From sequence record KT919973.1: a stretch of 64,000 nucleotides of DNA, one strand, 5' to 3'. Every line of letters starts with the position of its first letter. The first letter of the stretch is position 1. The translations under genes were made by a program, and so were the position numbers. The notes beneath the pieces are model-generated. The model worked only from the letters and a program-made list of their open reading frames with translations. It was not told the origin of the DNA and did not search any database. Positions 10,292-45,730 of the stretch are shown piece by piece.

Positions 10292-10320
10292 GGGTGAGAT
10301 TGATTTCTCACCCTTTTTTT
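10292..10320 (+). terminator. Rho-independent terminator after the gp12 paralogues
   Basis: GGGTGAGA-6nt-TCTCACCC stem followed by T7. Confidence 0.8.
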
Positions 10321-10345
10321 ACATTAGCGCAGCGAAGAAAATGGC

Positions 10346-10396
10346 AAGAGGCGGAAAAATTCCGTCTCATCTTAGTAGTATTAGTGGTTTTAGTGA
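10346..10396 (+). repeat. Dispersed intergenic repeat, copy 1 (51 bp identical to reverse complement of 36920-36970)
   Basis: AAGAGGCGGAAAAATTCCGTCTCATCTTAGTAGTATTAGTGGTTTTAGTGA; base-by-base match; weaker similarity continues on both flanks. Confidence 0.95.
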
Positions 10397-10432
10397 AGTT
10401 AGGGATATTAGTATGATTAGTATTAAATACGT

Positions 10433-10462
10433 GTTTAAAACCATGAATATGCTTGCTATTAT
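10433..10462 (+). promoter_or_regulatory. Putative sigma70-type promoter, GTTTAA-N18-TATTAT class
   Basis: GTTTAA 10433-38, TATTAT 10457-62 with TGn extension; same arrangement ends repeat copy 2. Confidence 0.5.
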
Positions 10463-10503
10463 TAAACACATAAAGACATTCCCTCTCTGTTTCTTTGTAT
10501 TGC

Positions 10504-10511
10504 TATAAATA
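10504..10511 (+). promoter_or_regulatory. T4-type late promoter for wac
   Basis: TATAAATA, 40 nt upstream of the wac ATG. Confidence 0.85.
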
Positions 10512-34015: not shown

Positions 34016-35537
34016 TATTAAAATTGAATACCATGACGAAAGTTATGCACGAGTAGTTGCCGAGCCAAGCATCACTCATGAAATGATTGATTATTTTTCA
34101 TTCTTGACGGACGGGTACAAATTCAACCCGAAGTTCAAGGCAGGCATTTGGGATGGCAAAATTCGACTAATGACGTATCAAGGTCTATTACCATACGGTC
34201 TAGTCGGACAAGCTAAAGCGTTTGCATCAAATATGATGTATACGATTGAAACCGATCCAATGCTAGATCCGATTGAGAAAATTTCTCGTGAAGATTTCGA
34301 AGCATGGGTTGAGTCTATTGACATCTACTCAGGGTCGAATAAGATTTCACCGTATTGGTATCAGATGGACTCTGTGTTTCACGGAATTAACAACCAACAC
34401 AGTCTATTGAATCTACCAACATCTGCGGGTAAATCATTAATTCAGTCGCTGATTACTAAATGGTTCTTAGCACAAGAAGAGCACGAACTTCAGAAAGTAT
34501 TAGTGATTGTACCTACAACTGCACTTGTCCAGCAAATGCGCGATGACTTCTTAGATTATCGTTTATTCGAACACAACGACATTTATCAGATTCGTGGTGG
34601 GGTTGATCGAGACGCAATCGGTGACTGCCGTATCGTTGTATCTACATGGCAATCTGCTGTAAAACAACCGAAAGAATGGTTTGACCAATTCGGTATGCTT
34701 TTAGTCGATGAGTGTCACTTGGCAACAGGTAAGTCATTAGACGGTATAATCAAGAAAATGACAAACTGTGAATACAAAATCGGTCTTACTGGCTCACTTC
34801 GAGACGGTAAAGCGAATATTCTACAGTACGTTGGTTCATTCGGTGATATTTTCCGACCTGTTTCAACTGCACAGCTAATGGAAGAAGGGCAAGTAACAGA
34901 TCTGAAGATAAACTGTTTAATGCTTGAATACCCACAGCCGCTACGTGACGAAATGAAAGGTAGTTCATATCAAGAAGAGATGAAATTCATTCTTGAGAAC
35001 AAGCAGCGAAATCGTTACTTGATTAAGCTTGCGCATCATTTAAGCGCGAAGAAAGGTGAGAATACGTTATTGTTGTTCAAGAACATCAAACACGGTAAAT
35101 TACTTTACGAAGCGTTGAAGAGCGTATATGACCCAGAGAAAGTGTTCTACGTATCTGGTGAAACTAAAACTGACGACCGTACGCATGTTAAGAAGATTGC
35201 AGAAGATATTGACGGGGCTATTATCGTAGCATCGTATGGTGTATTCTCGACTGGTATCAGTATCAAGAAACTACACAATGTAATTTTCGCGCACCCAACG
35301 AAGAGTAAGATCATCAACTTGCAGTCGATTGGTCGTATTCTACGTAAACACGGTTCGAAAGTTACGGCGAAGCTGTTTGACATTATCGACAACTTGGCAA
35401 TCAAGCCGAAACGTAAGAACGCTAAGAAGCCGTACACTCACGTAAATTATACTATGAAGCATGGTATGCAACGTATTGAGCTTTACAACCAAGAAGAGTT
35501 CAAATACGCAGTCAAGAAAGTAGATCTTGCCGCATAG
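34005..35537 (+). CDS. uvsW: DNA helicase UvsW
   Basis: WDGKIRL, LNLPTSAGKSLI, IVPTTALV, VDECH, GLTGS, LQSIGRILR; start at ATG 34005 or 34008. Confidence 0.96.
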   Translation: MMSDIKIEYHDESYARVVAEPSITHEMIDYFSFLTDGYKFNPKFKAGIWDGKIRLMTYQGLLPYGLVGQAKAFASNMMYTIETDPMLDPIEKISREDFEAWVESIDIYSGSNKISPYWYQMDSVFHGINNQHSLLNLPTSAGKSLIQSLITKWFLAQEEHELQKVLVIVPTTALVQQMRDDFLDYRLFEHNDIYQIRGGVDRDAIGDCRIVVSTWQSAVKQPKEWFDQFGMLLVDECHLATGKSLDGIIKKMTNCEYKIGLTGSLRDGKANILQYVGSFGDIFRPVSTAQLMEEGQVTDLKINCLMLEYPQPLRDEMKGSSYQEEMKFILENKQRNRYLIKLAHHLSAKKGENTLLLFKNIKHGKLLYEALKSVYDPEKVFYVSGETKTDDRTHVKKIAEDIDGAIIVASYGVFSTGISIKKLHNVIFAHPTKSKIINLQSIGRILRKHGSKVTAKLFDIIDNLAIKPKRKNAKKPYTHVNYTMKHGMQRIELYNQEEFKYAVKKVDLAA

Positions 35538-35542
35538 ATACG

Positions 35543-35570
35543 AAAAAGGGAGCAATTTGCTCCCTTTTTT
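35543..35570. terminator. Bidirectional terminator
   Basis: AAAAAGGGAGCAA-T-TTGCTCCCTTTTTT between convergent genes. Confidence 0.85.
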
Positions 35571-36022: not shown

Positions 36023-36436
36023 TTACAGACCGATTGCTAGTTTGAACAACTGAGACGCTTTACCACCATCGAAAACTTTACCTGTAGCTTTTAGAGCGCC
36101 CATTAGTTTACCCATGTCACGCATAGAATCAGCACCAGTTTCTAGAACAAAGTTAGAAACGAACGTGTCTAGATCTGATTCAGAGATTTTTGCAGGTAGT
36201 AGAGACTCAAGAACTGCGTTTTCTGCGTTCAGAATGTCTACATGATCGCCTTGTGCGTGTCCAAGAGCAAGTTTGTTGTTGTCAATCGCGCTTGAGATTA
36301 CTTTGATGCAAGACTCGTCATCGTGTTTTTGACGACGGTCAAGTTCACCCATAATGACACCGAGTACAGACGCAACTGCGTTGTTACGGTCTTTACGAGC
36401 TTGTAGGCGTGTTGCTTTAATTTGTTCGATGATCAT
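36023..36436 (-). CDS. GatB/YqeY-domain protein
   Basis: QARKDRN..ASVL, E..VLESLLP..ISE..L, MRDMGKLMG.LK, DGGKASQL. Confidence 0.85.
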   Translation of the reverse strand: MIIEQIKATRLQARKDRNNAVASVLGVIMGELDRRQKHDDESCIKVISSAIDNNKLALGHAQGDHVDILNAENAVLESLLPAKISESDLDTFVSNFVLETGADSMRDMGKLMGALKATGKVFDGGKASQLFKLAIGL

Positions 36437-36846
36437 ACTATACCACTCTCAATTTTTCTGTTGTCAATAATGTGTTTGATTGTGAAGCCCATTTGACTAA
36501 TGCCTTTCAAAGCTTCTTCGATGAATGATAACACATCTTTCATGTGTTGAAAAGTAGCAATTGCACGTTGAAGATATTCATCACCCGCAAGAGCATATTT
36601 CATTTCACTCTTTTCTACGATGAAATCACAAACTTCATCGTCATGTTTGCCGCTATAAAAGAGCCAGCGGTCTTTTCTCACAGCTTCCATTTTCATTTCA
36701 GCTTTGATAAGTAGTTGTCTTGCATCGGCTCGATATGCAAGCCACTTCGCATGAAGAACGGGAATTCGAATAGCTGCTGTTTCTAAAGCAGTTGTGTCAA
36801 TTTTCACGTCTTCGTGATATTCAATTTTTAAATCTTGTAGCTTCAT
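36433..36846 (-). CDS. uvsY: Recombination mediator UvsY
   Basis: 137 aa; DVKIDTTALE, IPVLHAKW, YSGK, FTIKHIIDNRKIESG. Confidence 0.92.
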   Translation of the reverse strand: MKLQDLKIEYHEDVKIDTTALETAAIRIPVLHAKWLAYRADARQLLIKAEMKMEAVRKDRWLFYSGKHDDEVCDFIVEKSEMKYALAGDEYLQRAIATFQHMKDVLSFIEEALKGISQMGFTIKHIIDNRKIESGIV

Positions 36847-36864
36847 AATAACCTCGCGTCATCA

Positions 36865-36894
36865 AGTATACATTTCATCATTGGTTGCTTAAAC
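36865..36894 (-). promoter_or_regulatory. Putative uvsY promoter, GTTTAA-N18-TATACT
   Basis: Minus strand; 18 nt upstream of the ATG; GAGG SD follows. Confidence 0.6.
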
Positions 36895-36919
36895 ACTAAT
36901 CCCTCTAATACTTCTAATA

Positions 36920-36970
36920 TCACTAAAACCACTAATACTACTAAGATGAGACGGAATTTTTCCGCCTCTT
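36920..36970 (-). repeat. Dispersed intergenic repeat, copy 2
   Basis: Reverse complement is identical to 10346-10396. Confidence 0.95.
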
Positions 36971-36991
36971 ACCGTTTTTCGCTTCGCGTAT

Positions 36992-37014
36992 AAAAAAAGC
37001 CCCGAAGGGCTCTT
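36992..37014 (-). terminator. Terminator after gp35
   Basis: AAGAGCCC-TTCG-GGGCTTTTTTT on the minus strand. Confidence 0.85.
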
Positions 37015-39716: not shown

Positions 39717-42700
39717 TTATATAGCGTGTCCGTACGTAAACTCCAACACGCCTTGATTATTAGTTGACATTCTTACAGAACCAACTTGAATGTAGTCTCT
39801 GTATTTAACGCTCTCACCTGTACCACCGTCTGGCGTGAACAAGTCGATACGCTCAGATAGAGTCTTACCAGCACCAGCCGATAGGGCTTGGTGTGGGTCT
39901 GAAGCATTCACTGGGTCTGCTGTACGCACGTCACTTGTTACTTGTACAATACCTTGATTCGTGCGGCTTGATTTGCGCAGACGATCATTGTTAATTGTAC
40001 CCGTTGTGATGTTCTCACCTGAGTGAGCGTGACTGTAATCATTAACTTGAATGTTTGTAGTAACGTTTCCGCTACCATCTAACGTAAAGTTACCAGACAA
40101 GTCGCCGGTGAACGTTACTGTACGCGCTGTAACCCACTTCTCAGACGCTTTAGCTACGTTGTTAATACCCAAGTACTTCTGACGAAGTGAACCGCTTGAC
40201 GGGCTCGAATAAGACCCGTATGTTGTATCAACGTTAGCAGTCGCTTCATTTTCATATATTGTATCACCGAACGATGCCCCACCTGGTTGAGTCGTATAAC
40301 CAGTTGAGTTTACTTGCCATCGAGTTGTGTCACCTGTCCCTGCGATTGAGAATGGTGAAGAAGACCCGTTACCACTACCGCCCACACGAATGCGAGGTTC
40401 GTCATTAAACCAGTCGAGTTTTACACTCGCTGCGTCGTTCGTTGGGTTTGCAACTAAGAAATAACCGCCACCTTTCGTTTGCACGAATTCGCCACTAAAC
40501 GTATACGTGCCATTGATTGTTTGGTCGATGTCACGACGTGCAAATTGTGTACTGTTCAAGCCATCTAGTAATTCTGAGTCATCAGCTTTAGCGTTTAGCG
40601 GTAAGTAGTTGCGCAATGCATAATGCAGACCGTAAGGTGAAACTGCATATGGAACACGCAAGTACGACGTATACGCTTGTGTTGAACCGTCTGTACTGTT
40701 ACCAACAAATGTTTCTGCTGGTGTTGCGATTTGTACGTTACCATAACGACTTTCATTTGCACGTGAGCTGTCAGAGTAACGAGTCCAGTGTAGCAAATCA
40801 CTCGGAGTAACAACAATTTCATTACTAGCTGTCGCTGCTTCGACTTCAGCTTGAGTCGCAAGACGCACGATACCGGTTTGCGTTTCAGTAGCACGACGCG
40901 CATTTAACTTCTGTGGTGTGATGATTACATCATCAAGCGCACCAGCTTGGGCATTCGCTTCTAATTGAGTCGCAACTTGTAGTGTACCACGTTGTGTTTC
41001 AGTCGCTGACGCGATGCTGAATGTAACGTCGCCCCATACTGTACCAGTATGCGATAGACCATCTGTTCCTGCTGTCACGAAATGATCACGGTCAAGCCAT
41101 GTCTTCAGTTTAAGTGGTGAAACAATACGAGTATCGTCTGTCCCTGAGTCAACTTCAGTTTGAGTTGCGATTTCCGCAACACCACGACGTGATTCAGTTG
41201 CTGTTCTGCTATTCAACGTTTCTGGTGTGATGAAGACTGTTGTCCACGATTCACCAGTTCCTGTTGTTGCATTTGCTTCAGACTGTGTAGCAGAACGAGC
41301 AATACCACGAACCGTTGAGCTTGCTTTCCACGCTGCTAATTTCTTAGGCGTGATGATCGCGTTATCAACTGTTGAGTCGTTGATGCGAAGTTCACTGCTC
41401 TTAGCAACCCATAATGTACCAGGTTGATTCTCTGTAGCACGATACTCATCAAGCATTTTTGGCGTTACGATACGCAGATGATCAGTTTTATCATATACTG
41501 TATTGTCAAGACCATTTACTGAACGGTCTGAACGCATATTCGCTGTTGATGTAACAATACCACCAGCATTGATGTTGTTCGACGCTTCGACTAGTTTTGC
41601 AACACCTGTTAGATCTTCTTCAGCTTGTGCAGCGTGGAATTTCATCGGTGTTAGAACTTGAACATCGTTAGTTGTGCTTCGCGTCTCGTTTTGAGTTGCG
41701 ATTTCAACTACACCGCGACGTGTTTCAGTTGCTGTACGCGCATTCAAACTACGTGGTGTTATGAACAGATCATGTCTGAAGTTTGTATCTGGGTAACGAA
41801 CAAACGTACCAGAACGCGATTCTTCAAGAGCTTCATCAGTTCCAAGAGTAGCAACACGAGCCATACCAACTTGCTGTTCACCTGCACGACGAGCGTCAAG
41901 CGTCTCTACCGTGATTACGTGGTCTTTCAGTGGGTTTTGATCAGCCCAAGGGTCTGCTGCATCTTCAGGGTGCGCATATTCAATCCCGTGTGCTAGAGCT
42001 TCCGTTGGGTCAGCTAATGGCACGATACCCGGGCGTTTACGGTATAGTTCATCAGCGATATCGATACGAGTCGCGATGTTACCGAACGACCATACTTTAC
42101 GACTCGCGTCGTAGTATAGAACTAGTGAATAACCGCTGTCATAATCACTAATTTCGAATGATTCAACGAAGAATGGAACGAAATCAACGTAATGACGGTA
42201 TTTTTGATAACGATATGTTTCAAAGTCCAAGAATACTTTGTATTCATCGGGGCCGTGACCTGGGTCATCATCACCGAAATTCGGGTGAACTTGAATCGTT
42301 ACTTTCTTATGAGCTGTTTTGTTGTGTGAGATCTCAATCCAGTCACCATCGGCTGGTTTTTCTGGTAGTGTGATCGTCATTGCAGGAACAGCATCTGCGA
42401 TTTCGATAGCGTAACGAGAACGAGGCTTCAATTCAACCGCGCTTGAATCCCCGACATAGTTCCATAAATGCGGGTTGTTCGCGATTGTGATTACCCATAC
42501 GCCAGTACCGTTATCATCGATGAATGTGATATCAGCGCCGCCGATAGTATCAAGACTGATAACAGAACTACGTTCGCCTGAAATAGGGTCTTGAATAACC
42601 TGACCCGTAGCAGTCGGGTTCACACCGATTTGAATCGACGTTTGATTCTCAAGATACGCAACATCTTTAAGATGAATTGTATCGCCCACGTTCGGGTTCA

Positions 42701-45085: not shown

Positions 45086-45680
45086 CGTATTTCGTGTTTA
45101 TTGTGCTGTAAAGGCGCATATGGGCGGAAAGTACGACATCTCCAAGTATAAACTCGGAATGAAAACACCTAGATCTGCGTTCGAGAAGCGTTCAGATAAG
45201 GTGTTTTTTGAACGGCTAGCCAAACGGCTAACATTGAATGATTGCTATCAGTTGCTTGTTAGTAACTTAGCAGCGAACCCCAATGCGATTTCTTATGAGA
45301 TTGCAGGTGCTGACGCTCATGAATTCTGGTTGAAACATACGGGATTTATGGAAATTTACAGTCAACACTACAAAAATGAACTACTTTCGATTTTTACTCT
45401 TATAAATAGAGAGAATAAAAAATTCAAAGATTTGTTTAGAGGCGAAGGGCATCCCGTTATAATGCAACTCGTGTTACGAAATACTATCTCAATTGAGACG
45501 TTCGTAATTCTGAATAGATTATTGAACTTCGTACCTGTAATCGACAAAGATTACGGAGACGATATCTTCTGGCACGAGTTCAAGACACGAGCTTTAGCAT
45601 ACGATAAGTTGCTGAAAATCGACGAAGTTCTTGCTAAAGAAATGTTTATTCAAATAAAAAATCAAAGTAAAATACAATAA
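45027..45680 (+). CDS. 59: Helicase loader gp59
   Basis: 217 aa; HMGGKYDISKY, FEKRSDKVFFERLA, ISIETFVILN. Confidence 0.9.
   Translation: MKRLLEVDLVLPRTWVNGYSVFRVYCAVKAHMGGKYDISKYKLGMKTPRSAFEKRSDKVFFERLAKRLTLNDCYQLLVSNLAANPNAISYEIAGADAHEFWLKHTGFMEIYSQHYKNELLSIFTLINRENKKFKDLFRGEGHPVIMQLVLRNTISIETFVILNRLLNFVPVIDKDYGDDIFWHEFKTRALAYDKLLKIDEVLAKEMFIQIKNQSKIQ
45434..45463 (+). promoter_or_regulatory. Putative gene 32 promoter inside gene 59
   Basis: GTTTAG-N18-TATAAT. Confidence 0.55.
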
Positions 45681-45730
45681 CACACTATACGATACTATAT
45701 CATACTATAAAATACAAGGTAAAATACAAT
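45661..45730 (+). promoter_or_regulatory. A-rich repetitive leader of gene 32 (candidate autogenous translational operator)
   Basis: TAAAATACAA three times; ACTATA three times at 10-nt spacing; very few G. Confidence 0.55.

Follow-up and report, generated by a model that had tools for sequence, protein, structure and literature searches.

The DNA analysed here (the window; 64,000 nt) spans bases 124001-188000 of record KT919973.1, the genome of phi-ST2, which is a KVP40-like Vibrio phage of the T4 type in the genus Schizotequatrovirus. Two intergenic junctions of the window, one between the short-tail-fibre gene 12-2 and wac and the other between gene 35 and uvsY, hold oppositely oriented copies of a single element, here called the module, in which a small box and a hairpin are followed by an array of 9-nt repeats. 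Positions are those of the window unless stated otherwise. The inverted match between 10346-10396 and the reverse complement of 36920-36970 is exact over 51 of 51 nt, as had been reported, and has no further exact extension. A repeat search of the window delimited the arms at 10338-10427 and 36889-36978 (90 nt, 87% identity), which form the longest inverted pair in the window by far and the sole long one.

A first-pass annotation of the window had placed both copies directly 3' of an intrinsic terminator and ahead of a promoter of the form GTTTAA-N18-TAnnnT, with copy 2 feeding uvsY, and this layout was borne out. Copy 1 follows the intrinsic terminator of gene 12-2 (10292-10320, + strand; an 8-bp stem within 10292-10313 and a run of seven T), which is kept in phages KVP40 and nt-1, and copy 2 follows that of gene 35 (36991-37011, - strand; AGCCC-TTCG-GGGCT with its hairpin at 36998-37011, then seven T). 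On the other side of copy 1 is an early-type sigma-70 promoter with a TG extension (TTTAAA-N17-TATTAT; 10434-10462, +), also kept in KVP40 and nt-1, and 3' of it the late gene wac has its own T4 late-promoter consensus, TATAAATA, at 10504-10511. Copy 2 leads into an early-type promoter (GTTTAA-N18-TATACT; 36865-36894, -) and the uvsY orthologue (36433-36846); the hexamers of this promoter are kept in KVP40 and nt-1, while its spacer has diverged. A consensus promoter scan called the copy-1 promoter with its extended -10, and in its strict form missed the uvsY promoter.

Organization of the module

Read 5' to 3' on the strand of the flanking genes, the module consists of the box, the main hairpin, a CATC linker and the 9-nt array. 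The box, usually GCGAAGC, belongs to the GC-G(N)A-GC mini-hairpin motif; it reads GCGCAGC in copy 1 (10327-10337, +) and GCGAAGC in copy 2 (36981-36987, -), and its variants, GCGCAGC and GCGTCAGC, change the middle of the loop only. It is found in most copies and is missing from the copy before nrdH and from some copies at the position called A below. As a unique signal GCGAAGC was rejected, since the heptamer occurs 48 to 60 times per genome, mostly within genes; what is meaningful about the box is only its fixed place in the module and the confinement of its variation to the loop.

The main hairpin, of 6 to 9 bp with the loop AAA, starts 11 to 14 nt 3' of the box. In both window copies it reads GAGGCGGAA-AAA-TTCCGTCTC (10348-10368, +, with 9 bp including one G-T/U pair; 36948-36968, -). 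The five upper pairs are invariant, save that three copies have C-G in place of G-C at two of them; the pair below them is G-U in 11 sequences and G-C in nine, and the lower stem is weak. The one-strand G-U pair that the annotation had described is thus present, but it is confined to one hairpin variant, other copies having G-C with an adjacent G.A mismatch. In a covariation analysis 86.6% of the cells were paired, with a score of 0.147 against 0.083 in shuffled alignments (none of 500 shuffles reached 0.147). The signal comes from compensatory change, namely the two flipped pairs in three sequences, which are probably one event spread by gene conversion. The sense-strand hairpin folds 1-2 kcal/mol better than the antisense one.

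What had been described as a TAG-rich tract is indeed rich in TAG, but it is actually a strict tandem array of six 9-nt units, each TTAG followed by N5. The array of copy 1, with the ATC of the linker and six TTAGNNNNN units, lies at 10369-10425 (+), is C-free on the sense strand and coincides with the local minimum of duplex stability; that of copy 2 (36891-36947, -) likewise has the ATC linker and six TTAG units, the sixth of which enters the -35 element. Phage copies have five or six TTAGNNNNN units. Within the units T1, T2 and G4 are invariant, A3 is kept in 102 of 107, position 6 is a purine and the rest vary. On the sense strand C occurs at four of 535 variable positions, against 19.6% C in the genome, while G stays at 24%; being nearly C-free, this strand cannot self-pair.

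Several other identities of the module were considered. A discrete non-coding RNA gene, one of the roles first suggested, was rejected, as there is no promoter 5' of the hairpin and no terminator after the array, and the covariance models of Rfam 15 recovered no family (the best match, to an unrelated small RNA, had an E value of 0.33 and 26 bits, where the gathering score is 60). No convincing match to DnaA boxes or trios, Chi, IHF or Fis sites or an UP element was seen by eye, and an UP element is further disfavoured because the distance from the array to the -35 varies. A small protein gene at 10341-10508 (55 aa) was dismissed, as its start and frame are not kept in other copies. Small open reading frames (ORFs) do run over module copies, among them this one, ORF204 of nt-1 (L143, 4096-4236) and VPHF86_0343 of phage F86 (L163, 168-371); since frame and start differ between copies, they are probably annotation artefacts. 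At window 36847-36899 (-), in phi-ST2, the sixth unit of copy 2 provides a GTG that opens a 17-codon frame, whose closing TGA overlaps the uvsY ATG. The frame is not kept in KVP40 or nt-1 and is therefore probably fortuitous. Two unrelated upstream ORFs finish in a box-encoded K-S-E-A, and one frame stays open across the array; the spacing between box and hairpin is out of frame in other copies, unlike what stop-codon read-through or bypass would need.

Distribution, spacing and conservation

The whole phi-ST2 record was searched in two ways, with the 9-nt periodic pattern and then with an nhmmer profile built from the copies, and both searches gave exactly six copies, the next-best match having an E value above 5. 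The element is therefore not a two-copy one, as first described: that count was an artefact of the window, since four of the six copies lie outside it. In phi-ST2 coordinates, copy A lies at 0.6 kb (+), after phiST2_0001 and before the rIIA-side cluster; copy B at 56.7 kb (+), between phiST2_0127 and 0128; a third at 108.4 kb (-), at the gene 3/gene 1 junction (gp3/gp1); the wac and uvsY copies, which are window copies 1 and 2, at 134.4 kb (+) and 160.9 kb (-); and the last at 203.6 kb (+), before the glutaredoxin gene (nrdH). The same profile found six matches, and no more, in each of phi-ST2, KVP40 and nt-1, at six identical junctions, nt-1 being a member of a different genus, Mylasvirus. 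Of the related KVP40-like GenBank records, 51 of 51 show four to six places. The module is retained in the distant members 1.081.O, K566 and F86, and likewise in a metagenomic relative with only about 70% identity in the baseplate proteins. The search of the whole genome and its relatives for further copies, which the annotation had proposed, thus shows the repeated element to be real and more extensive than had been stated.

A loose four-unit TTAG scan of viral contigs gave only chance or coding repeats (the match in contig L127 was due to chance), and patterns specific to the module found only KVP40 and VH7D in IMG/VR. No match to the module was obtained among the representative genomes of GTDB or the plasmids of PLSDB, and a literature search found no description of it or of its sequence. 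A metagenome scan for the hairpin-array junction returned five matches, four of them in non-phage contigs, which are taken up below.

Every copy is co-oriented with its flanking genes. Four of the six (gp3/gp1, wac, uvsY and nrdH) begin 4-15 nt past a strong canonical terminator, and at these positions terminator and promoter are kept apart by about 95 nt of module. Five of the six are followed, after 0 to about 30 nt, by a promoter with a -35 of GTTTA(A/G/C) and no MotA box; across the three genomes the GTTTA and the -10 are conserved and the spacer has drifted. There is a promoter at position A, with no terminator upstream. Position B, within an early operon, has neither, and its last units form the Shine-Dalgarno sequence and the start codon of the next gene; only at A and B is the array entered by an upstream transcript. 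The genes upstream or downstream of the six copies make up no functional set, and no initiator gene adjoins any phi-ST2 copy.

On the circular map the six sites are over-dispersed, with gaps of 26-56 kb. Under random placement, a minimum gap as large as this one, or a variance as low, has a probability of 0.003-0.008 per genome, the three orthologous genomes counting as one observation. Nearest-neighbour energies show that, at six of six sites, no 54-bp duplex within 1 kb is less stable than the array, and the arrays rank among the 25 least stable sites per genome, in the most unstable 0.02-0.4% of all its windows.

The module is better conserved than either the promoter spacers or the flanking proteins, the insert of about 95 nt being about 90% conserved where flanking proteins are about 70% identical; UvsY identity itself falls straight to below 40% outside the KVP40-like group. 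Conservation across two genera and in the metagenomic relative indicates strong purifying selection. At the same time, the variants of the hairpin and of the first unit (TAGTA or TAGAA) sort by genome and not by position; for example, a CCC/GGG hairpin is found at position A in phi-ST2 and only at gp3/gp1 in KVP40. As the variants do not follow orthology, they show gene conversion between copies. At positions A and B the neighbours in nt-1 differ from those in KVP40 and phi-ST2 from the exact edge of the module. The module sits where close relatives swap gene cassettes, and it is also common to an unrelated island. The general idea that the annotation had put forward, a selected, repeated cis element homogenised by gene conversion, is therefore upheld by the conservation in two genera and the non-orthologous variants.

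A chromosomal island carrying the module

The four non-phage metagenome contigs, and then a look-up of one of their proteins, led to a mobile island of about 17.5 kb (for example L155 1548-20061; contigs L155-L160). The region also occurs in three NCBI assemblies and in other samples, on chromosomal contigs as long as 737 kb. A peptidase M32 gene is the insertion site of one version, and another version lies elsewhere. The island encodes a large serine recombinase, a repressor-like helix-turn-helix protein, Thoeris ThsA/ThsB, a BsuBI/PstI-type restriction enzyme with its methylase, and a Rep-like protein whose variable N-terminus is matched with variable iterons. It is absent from the GTDB species representatives and PLSDB, and no description of it was found.

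Several of its signals resemble those of the phage. The island has a homologue of the gp45 sliding clamp, with 51% and 43% identity over two domains and a 137-residue insert, which has no relative among the GTDB representatives, and TATAAATA stands 27 nt 5' of the rep operon in every variant. A 31-nt terminator (L155 4436-4466), which reads GGGAGCAAATTGCTCCC followed by a T-run and CGTATCT, is 97% identical to the terminator after uvsY.-2 (window 35536-35566, -) and is a second non-coding segment common to phage and island. The first is the module. Its island copy (L155 12863-12955, -), which shares 93-97% identity with copies A and B of KVP40, is flanked by two tandem promoters under operator control; it is located upstream of the iterons, and its last bases are a start codon. 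Three island copies break the covarying hairpin pairs. Some variants have a disrupted hairpin but an intact CATC and array; in another, a triplicated 36-nt block brings the array to 14 units. To judge from its sequence, the island resembles a satellite, or a defence island, that is keyed to KVP40-like phages, and the link between the module and a phage-mimicking chromosomal island is the most unexpected result of this work.

Two further features of the island were noted. At L155 13142-13235 (+), an imperfect inverted repeat and then an intrinsic terminator lie 3' of TATAAATA, and a late-promoter RNA of about 85 nt is thereby predicted next to the divergent operon start. One variant encodes a 60-aa homologue (L155 11720-11899, -; 43-47% identity) of phiST2_0158 (L003 27636-27836, outside the window), a small protein family kept in phi-ST2, KVP40 and nt-1; the homologue is absent from most island variants that retain the module. 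The family has no Pfam match and a single-sequence AF2 model of low confidence (pLDDT 63), and it may be compatible with a ribbon-helix-helix fold, to judge from the sequence pattern and the predicted strand-helix-helix order only.

Possible functions of the module

Taken together, the findings suggest that the module is a cis-acting site that works on one strand, in single-stranded form, and is probably read by a dedicated protein, with a role that is genome-wide and not gene-specific. Four readings were weighed, and we rank an origin-type site first, an RNA element second, a duplex operator third and a recombination cassette fourth; what probability these leave over belongs to functions that we have not thought of.

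Our first choice, still a tentative one, is that the modules are candidate early replication-entry sites, that is, origin-type sites of unwinding and primosome loading, six per KVP40-like phage. Early transcription from the adjacent promoter would cause negative supercoiling or hybrid formation and so open the TpA-rich array (at positions A and B transcription through the module itself would do so), the hairpins would extrude and fix the edge of the bubble, and the 9-nt-spaced TTAG motifs on the unstructured strand would contact an oligomeric single-strand binder or a helicase loader. The fork would then depart in the direction of transcription, which is our proposed reason for the fixed orientation of the module. 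Such a role would fit the copy number, the even spacing, the link to early transcription, the instability of the array and its co-orientation. It would equally fit the shielding of four copies by terminators from incoming RNA polymerase, the position of the hairpins at the 5' edge of an array with one unstructured strand, and the presence of an early promoter, with no obvious coding purpose, before the late gene wac. We also count in its favour the hairpin, with its compensatory flips and its better folding on the sense strand, the near-absence of C, and the conservation of the module above that of the neighbouring proteins. In T4, at least five origins are fired early in dependence on early or middle promoters, mostly in late-gene regions, and one of them lies at uvsY (PMC3016281).

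A number of observations weigh against an origin. About 20 other AT-rich intergenic sites per genome are comparably unstable. The array lies upstream of the promoter in five of six copies, and there is no MotA box, unlike the well-understood T4 origins, and at four copies no primer transcript is obvious, given the terminator upstream. At position B, as in the island, a ribosome-binding site and start codon follow the array without a gap. The even spacing could reflect selection against recombination between nearby repeats, and the exclusion of C, the fixed orientation and the G-U pairing suit a role at the RNA level equally well. No candidate for the binding protein was found, and the island, having its own Rep-like gene and iterons, has no obvious need of a phage origin.

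It is possible, if more doubtful than an origin-type role, that the module acts instead as a boundary or processing element in read-through or polycistronic transcripts. The hairpin would cap the upstream mRNA, and the C-free UUAG array would serve as a platform for RNase E-type cleavage or for an oligomeric phage RNA-binding protein, so that two transcription units are uncoupled in the manner of the T7 RNase III sites. The RNase E-type consensus is RN↓WUU, and this motif recurs at the unit boundaries of the array. The strict co-orientation with transcription, the exclusion of C with G retained, which suits unstructured RNA, and the G-U pair and better folding of the sense strand are all in keeping with such an element. 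Positions A and B, which have no upstream terminator, are certainly transcribed, both at B and in the island the next ORF takes its Shine-Dalgarno sequence and start codon from the last units, and the island module lies downstream of a promoter. Against this, four of the six copies lie between a strong terminator and a promoter, so most of the neighbouring mRNA would be without the module, and only six of the many operon boundaries bear one, among upstream and downstream genes that form no coherent set. An RNA element would also leave the even genome spacing without a reason, lacks an Rfam match, and would hardly need a primary sequence kept far more strictly than a structure and an AU-rich site demand.

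A third explanation, which we regard as distinctly unlikely, is that of a double-stranded operator or roadblock, in which a small phage repressor or partition-type protein would bind cooperatively to 9-bp TTAG-N5 repeats and so regulate the early promoter beside them or stop read-through; the model could also take the form of an orientation-specific "stoperator". The tetramer core with its fixed spacer, the gain or loss of whole units (5, 6 or 14) and the proximity to promoters would all be expected of such a site, and the phiST2_0158 homologue, with its pattern compatible with ribbon-helix-helix proteins, offers a conceivable ligand in one island variant. Yet that homologue is missing from most of the variants that keep the module, and its family has no Pfam match and a structure model of low confidence. 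Moreover, the array stands at no constant distance from, or phase with, the -35 (0 to about 30 bp, and 75 bp in the island), there is no promoter at all at position B, and a duplex site would leave the strand-specific exclusion of C and the conserved hairpins unexplained.

The least probable of the four is an enlarged terminator/early-promoter cassette, of the type of the promoter/stem-loop cassettes (PeSLs) of T4-like phages, kept mainly as homology for gene conversion and modular shuffling and with no molecular function beyond ordinary termination and promoter context. The copies, being near-identical, do also recombine, as gene conversion, cassette swapping and the island copy attest. Four of six have a terminator stem-loop and then, beyond about 95 nt of module, an early promoter. 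The variants are distributed as gene conversion would have it, at positions A and B the difference between nt-1 and the other two phages begins precisely at the edge of the module, and the module and the 31-nt phage terminator shared with the island suggest an exchange of regulatory cassettes. Nevertheless, PeSLs are numerous, variable and found in hyperplastic regions, whereas the modules are six, fixed and half of them in the conserved structural core; an insert about 90% kept beside proteins about 70% identical needs direct selection on its sequence, and the periodic TTAG, the exclusion of C and the hairpin compensation are not explained by recombination alone.

A broader view, unlikely as a whole, joins the origin-type reading to the island and takes the module as a shared cis-signal of a phage-island conflict. 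The six phage copies would be early replication or primosome entry sites bound by a dedicated single-strand-binding factor, and a PLE-like chromosomal island of the phage hosts, wired to the phage through TATAAATA, the phage terminator and the gp45 clamp mimic, would use its own copy to get itself amplified, to sense infection or to titrate the factor. If true, this would define the first origin motif in a T4-like group of phages, and the island would be the first of its kind, satellite or defence, to be keyed to Straboviridae.

We know of no mapped replication origins for KVP40, and the KVP40 genome paper reportedly did not identify features of early- and middle-mode transcription. A single conserved 100-nt module at six evenly spaced sites therefore offers concrete targets for work on origin firing, RNA processing or protein binding, for which Vibrio natriegens, with phage nt-1, is one tractable host. 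That a mobile island bears the module and also imitates the late promoters and the clamp of the phage suggests a phage-island interaction, so far undescribed, in vibrios of the sea and of aquaculture, which would matter for phage therapy with KVP40-like phages. Should the module be merely a regulatory or recombination cassette, it would still extend the PeSL picture to the exchange of cassettes between virulent phages and chromosomal islands.

Other features of the phi-ST2 genome

Three features elsewhere in the genome were noted in passing. A 10-nt periodic, G-poor and ATAC-rich tract (window 45668-45717) fills the spacer between genes 59 and 32 up to the gp32 start codon and is a candidate counterpart of the unstructured autoregulatory operator of T4 gp32. 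Outside the window, the orthologue of KVP40.0300 (phi-ST2 record 91292-92728; 478 aa, annotated as 'RNA-binding protein') adjoins a tRNA cluster at 98-106 kb that includes 'pseudo-tRNAs' of 113-124 nt, and the two could be a pair like Ro and Y RNA. Finally, a 76-nt direct repeat (window 41159-41234 and 41690-41765; 79% identity, 531 nt apart) within the orthologue of gene 34, for the large tail fibre, is presumably a coding repeat.

Comparison with known systems

The closest precedents for an origin-type role are the R-loop origins of T4, ori(uvsY) and ori(34), which resemble the modules in that several are fired early, a promoter accompanies an easily unwound tract, one lies at uvsY and their orientation is coupled to transcription (PMC3016281). 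The T4 origins have no common motif, whereas here one sequence recurs at all six sites. Nor is the direct analogy with T4 ori(uvsY) that the first-pass annotation had drawn supported. The T4 origin (oriF) is a MotA-box middle promoter, with the TGCTT box at -30 and a -10, seen in its sequence as TGCTTCA...TATAAT, and its unwinding element, which the transcript enters, lies about 50 bp downstream of that promoter, at the start of uvsY, while at the module the promoter is of the early type and the module is upstream of it, behind a terminator. T4 oriE, which requires an early promoter, likewise has short direct repeats clustered nearby at even intervals, but these iterons are 12 nt long, recur every 24 nt inside gene 5, and share no sequence similarity with the array. 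Their role in replication is unproven, and they were rejected as a homologue of the array, as they coincide with the coding repeats of the gene 5 beta-helix. In iteron-type origins direct repeats are bound by an initiator whose gene is close by; the module has direct repeats and no adjoining initiator gene, and the Rep-like gene of the island pairs with other iterons.

At the RNA level, the operators of TRAP and HutP, which have UAG repeats, and the T4 gene 32 mRNA operator combine a structured nucleation element with spaced (U)UAG motifs that are bound by an oligomer. The module likewise has a structured element and then an unstructured tract with regular motifs of the (U)UAG type. It differs in its spacer, which is 6 nt (a 9-nt period) and not 2-4 nt, in having no competing terminator/antiterminator fold, and in that the main mRNAs exclude most copies; no cognate protein was found. 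Type III toxin-antitoxin systems have ToxI-like RNAs in which repeats of about 36 nt precede a terminator and a gene of the ToxN type. Here the unit measures 9 nt, the genes 3' of the modules are wac, uvsY, gene 1, nrdH and genes of unknown kind, and duplication of a 36-nt block is seen in one island only.

Precedents for tandem or oriented operators are the arrays bound by ribbon-helix-helix proteins (the tetramer boxes of ParG/parH, the omega heptads and the MetJ boxes) and the stoperators of mycobacteriophages. Like these, the module has short tandem repeats with a 4-bp core, a fixed spacing, a variable number of units and a promoter nearby, and it shares with the stoperators a single orientation relative to transcription; unlike them, it has a 9-bp period, a strand-specific exclusion of one base and attached hairpins. 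PeSLs, for their part, have been described by Comeau, Arbiol and Krisch in nt-1 and KVP40 themselves (Arbiol 2010; Comeau 2014, PMC4122927), with a stem-loop of the form A3-4G3-loop-C3T3-4 and a TTGYVH-N17-TAWWAT promoter (PMC4122927). Like them, the module goes at four of its six positions with an intergenic terminator stem-loop and an early promoter, here about 95 nt apart, and it has an AT-rich tract 5' of the -35 and lies at junctions where cassettes are swapped; it is unlike them in its second hairpin, GCGAAGC box and 9-nt TTAG array, none of which the text of PMC4122927 names.

As to the island, it is best compared with the PLE-type Vibrio phage satellites and defence islands. Its gene content is unrelated to theirs, and it is apparently keyed, through TATAAATA and the gp45 homologue, to a T4-like (Straboviridae) phage; it is similar to them in its size of about 18 kb, its large serine recombinase, its own Rep-like gene with iterons, and expression signals that appear to be keyed to a lytic helper phage.

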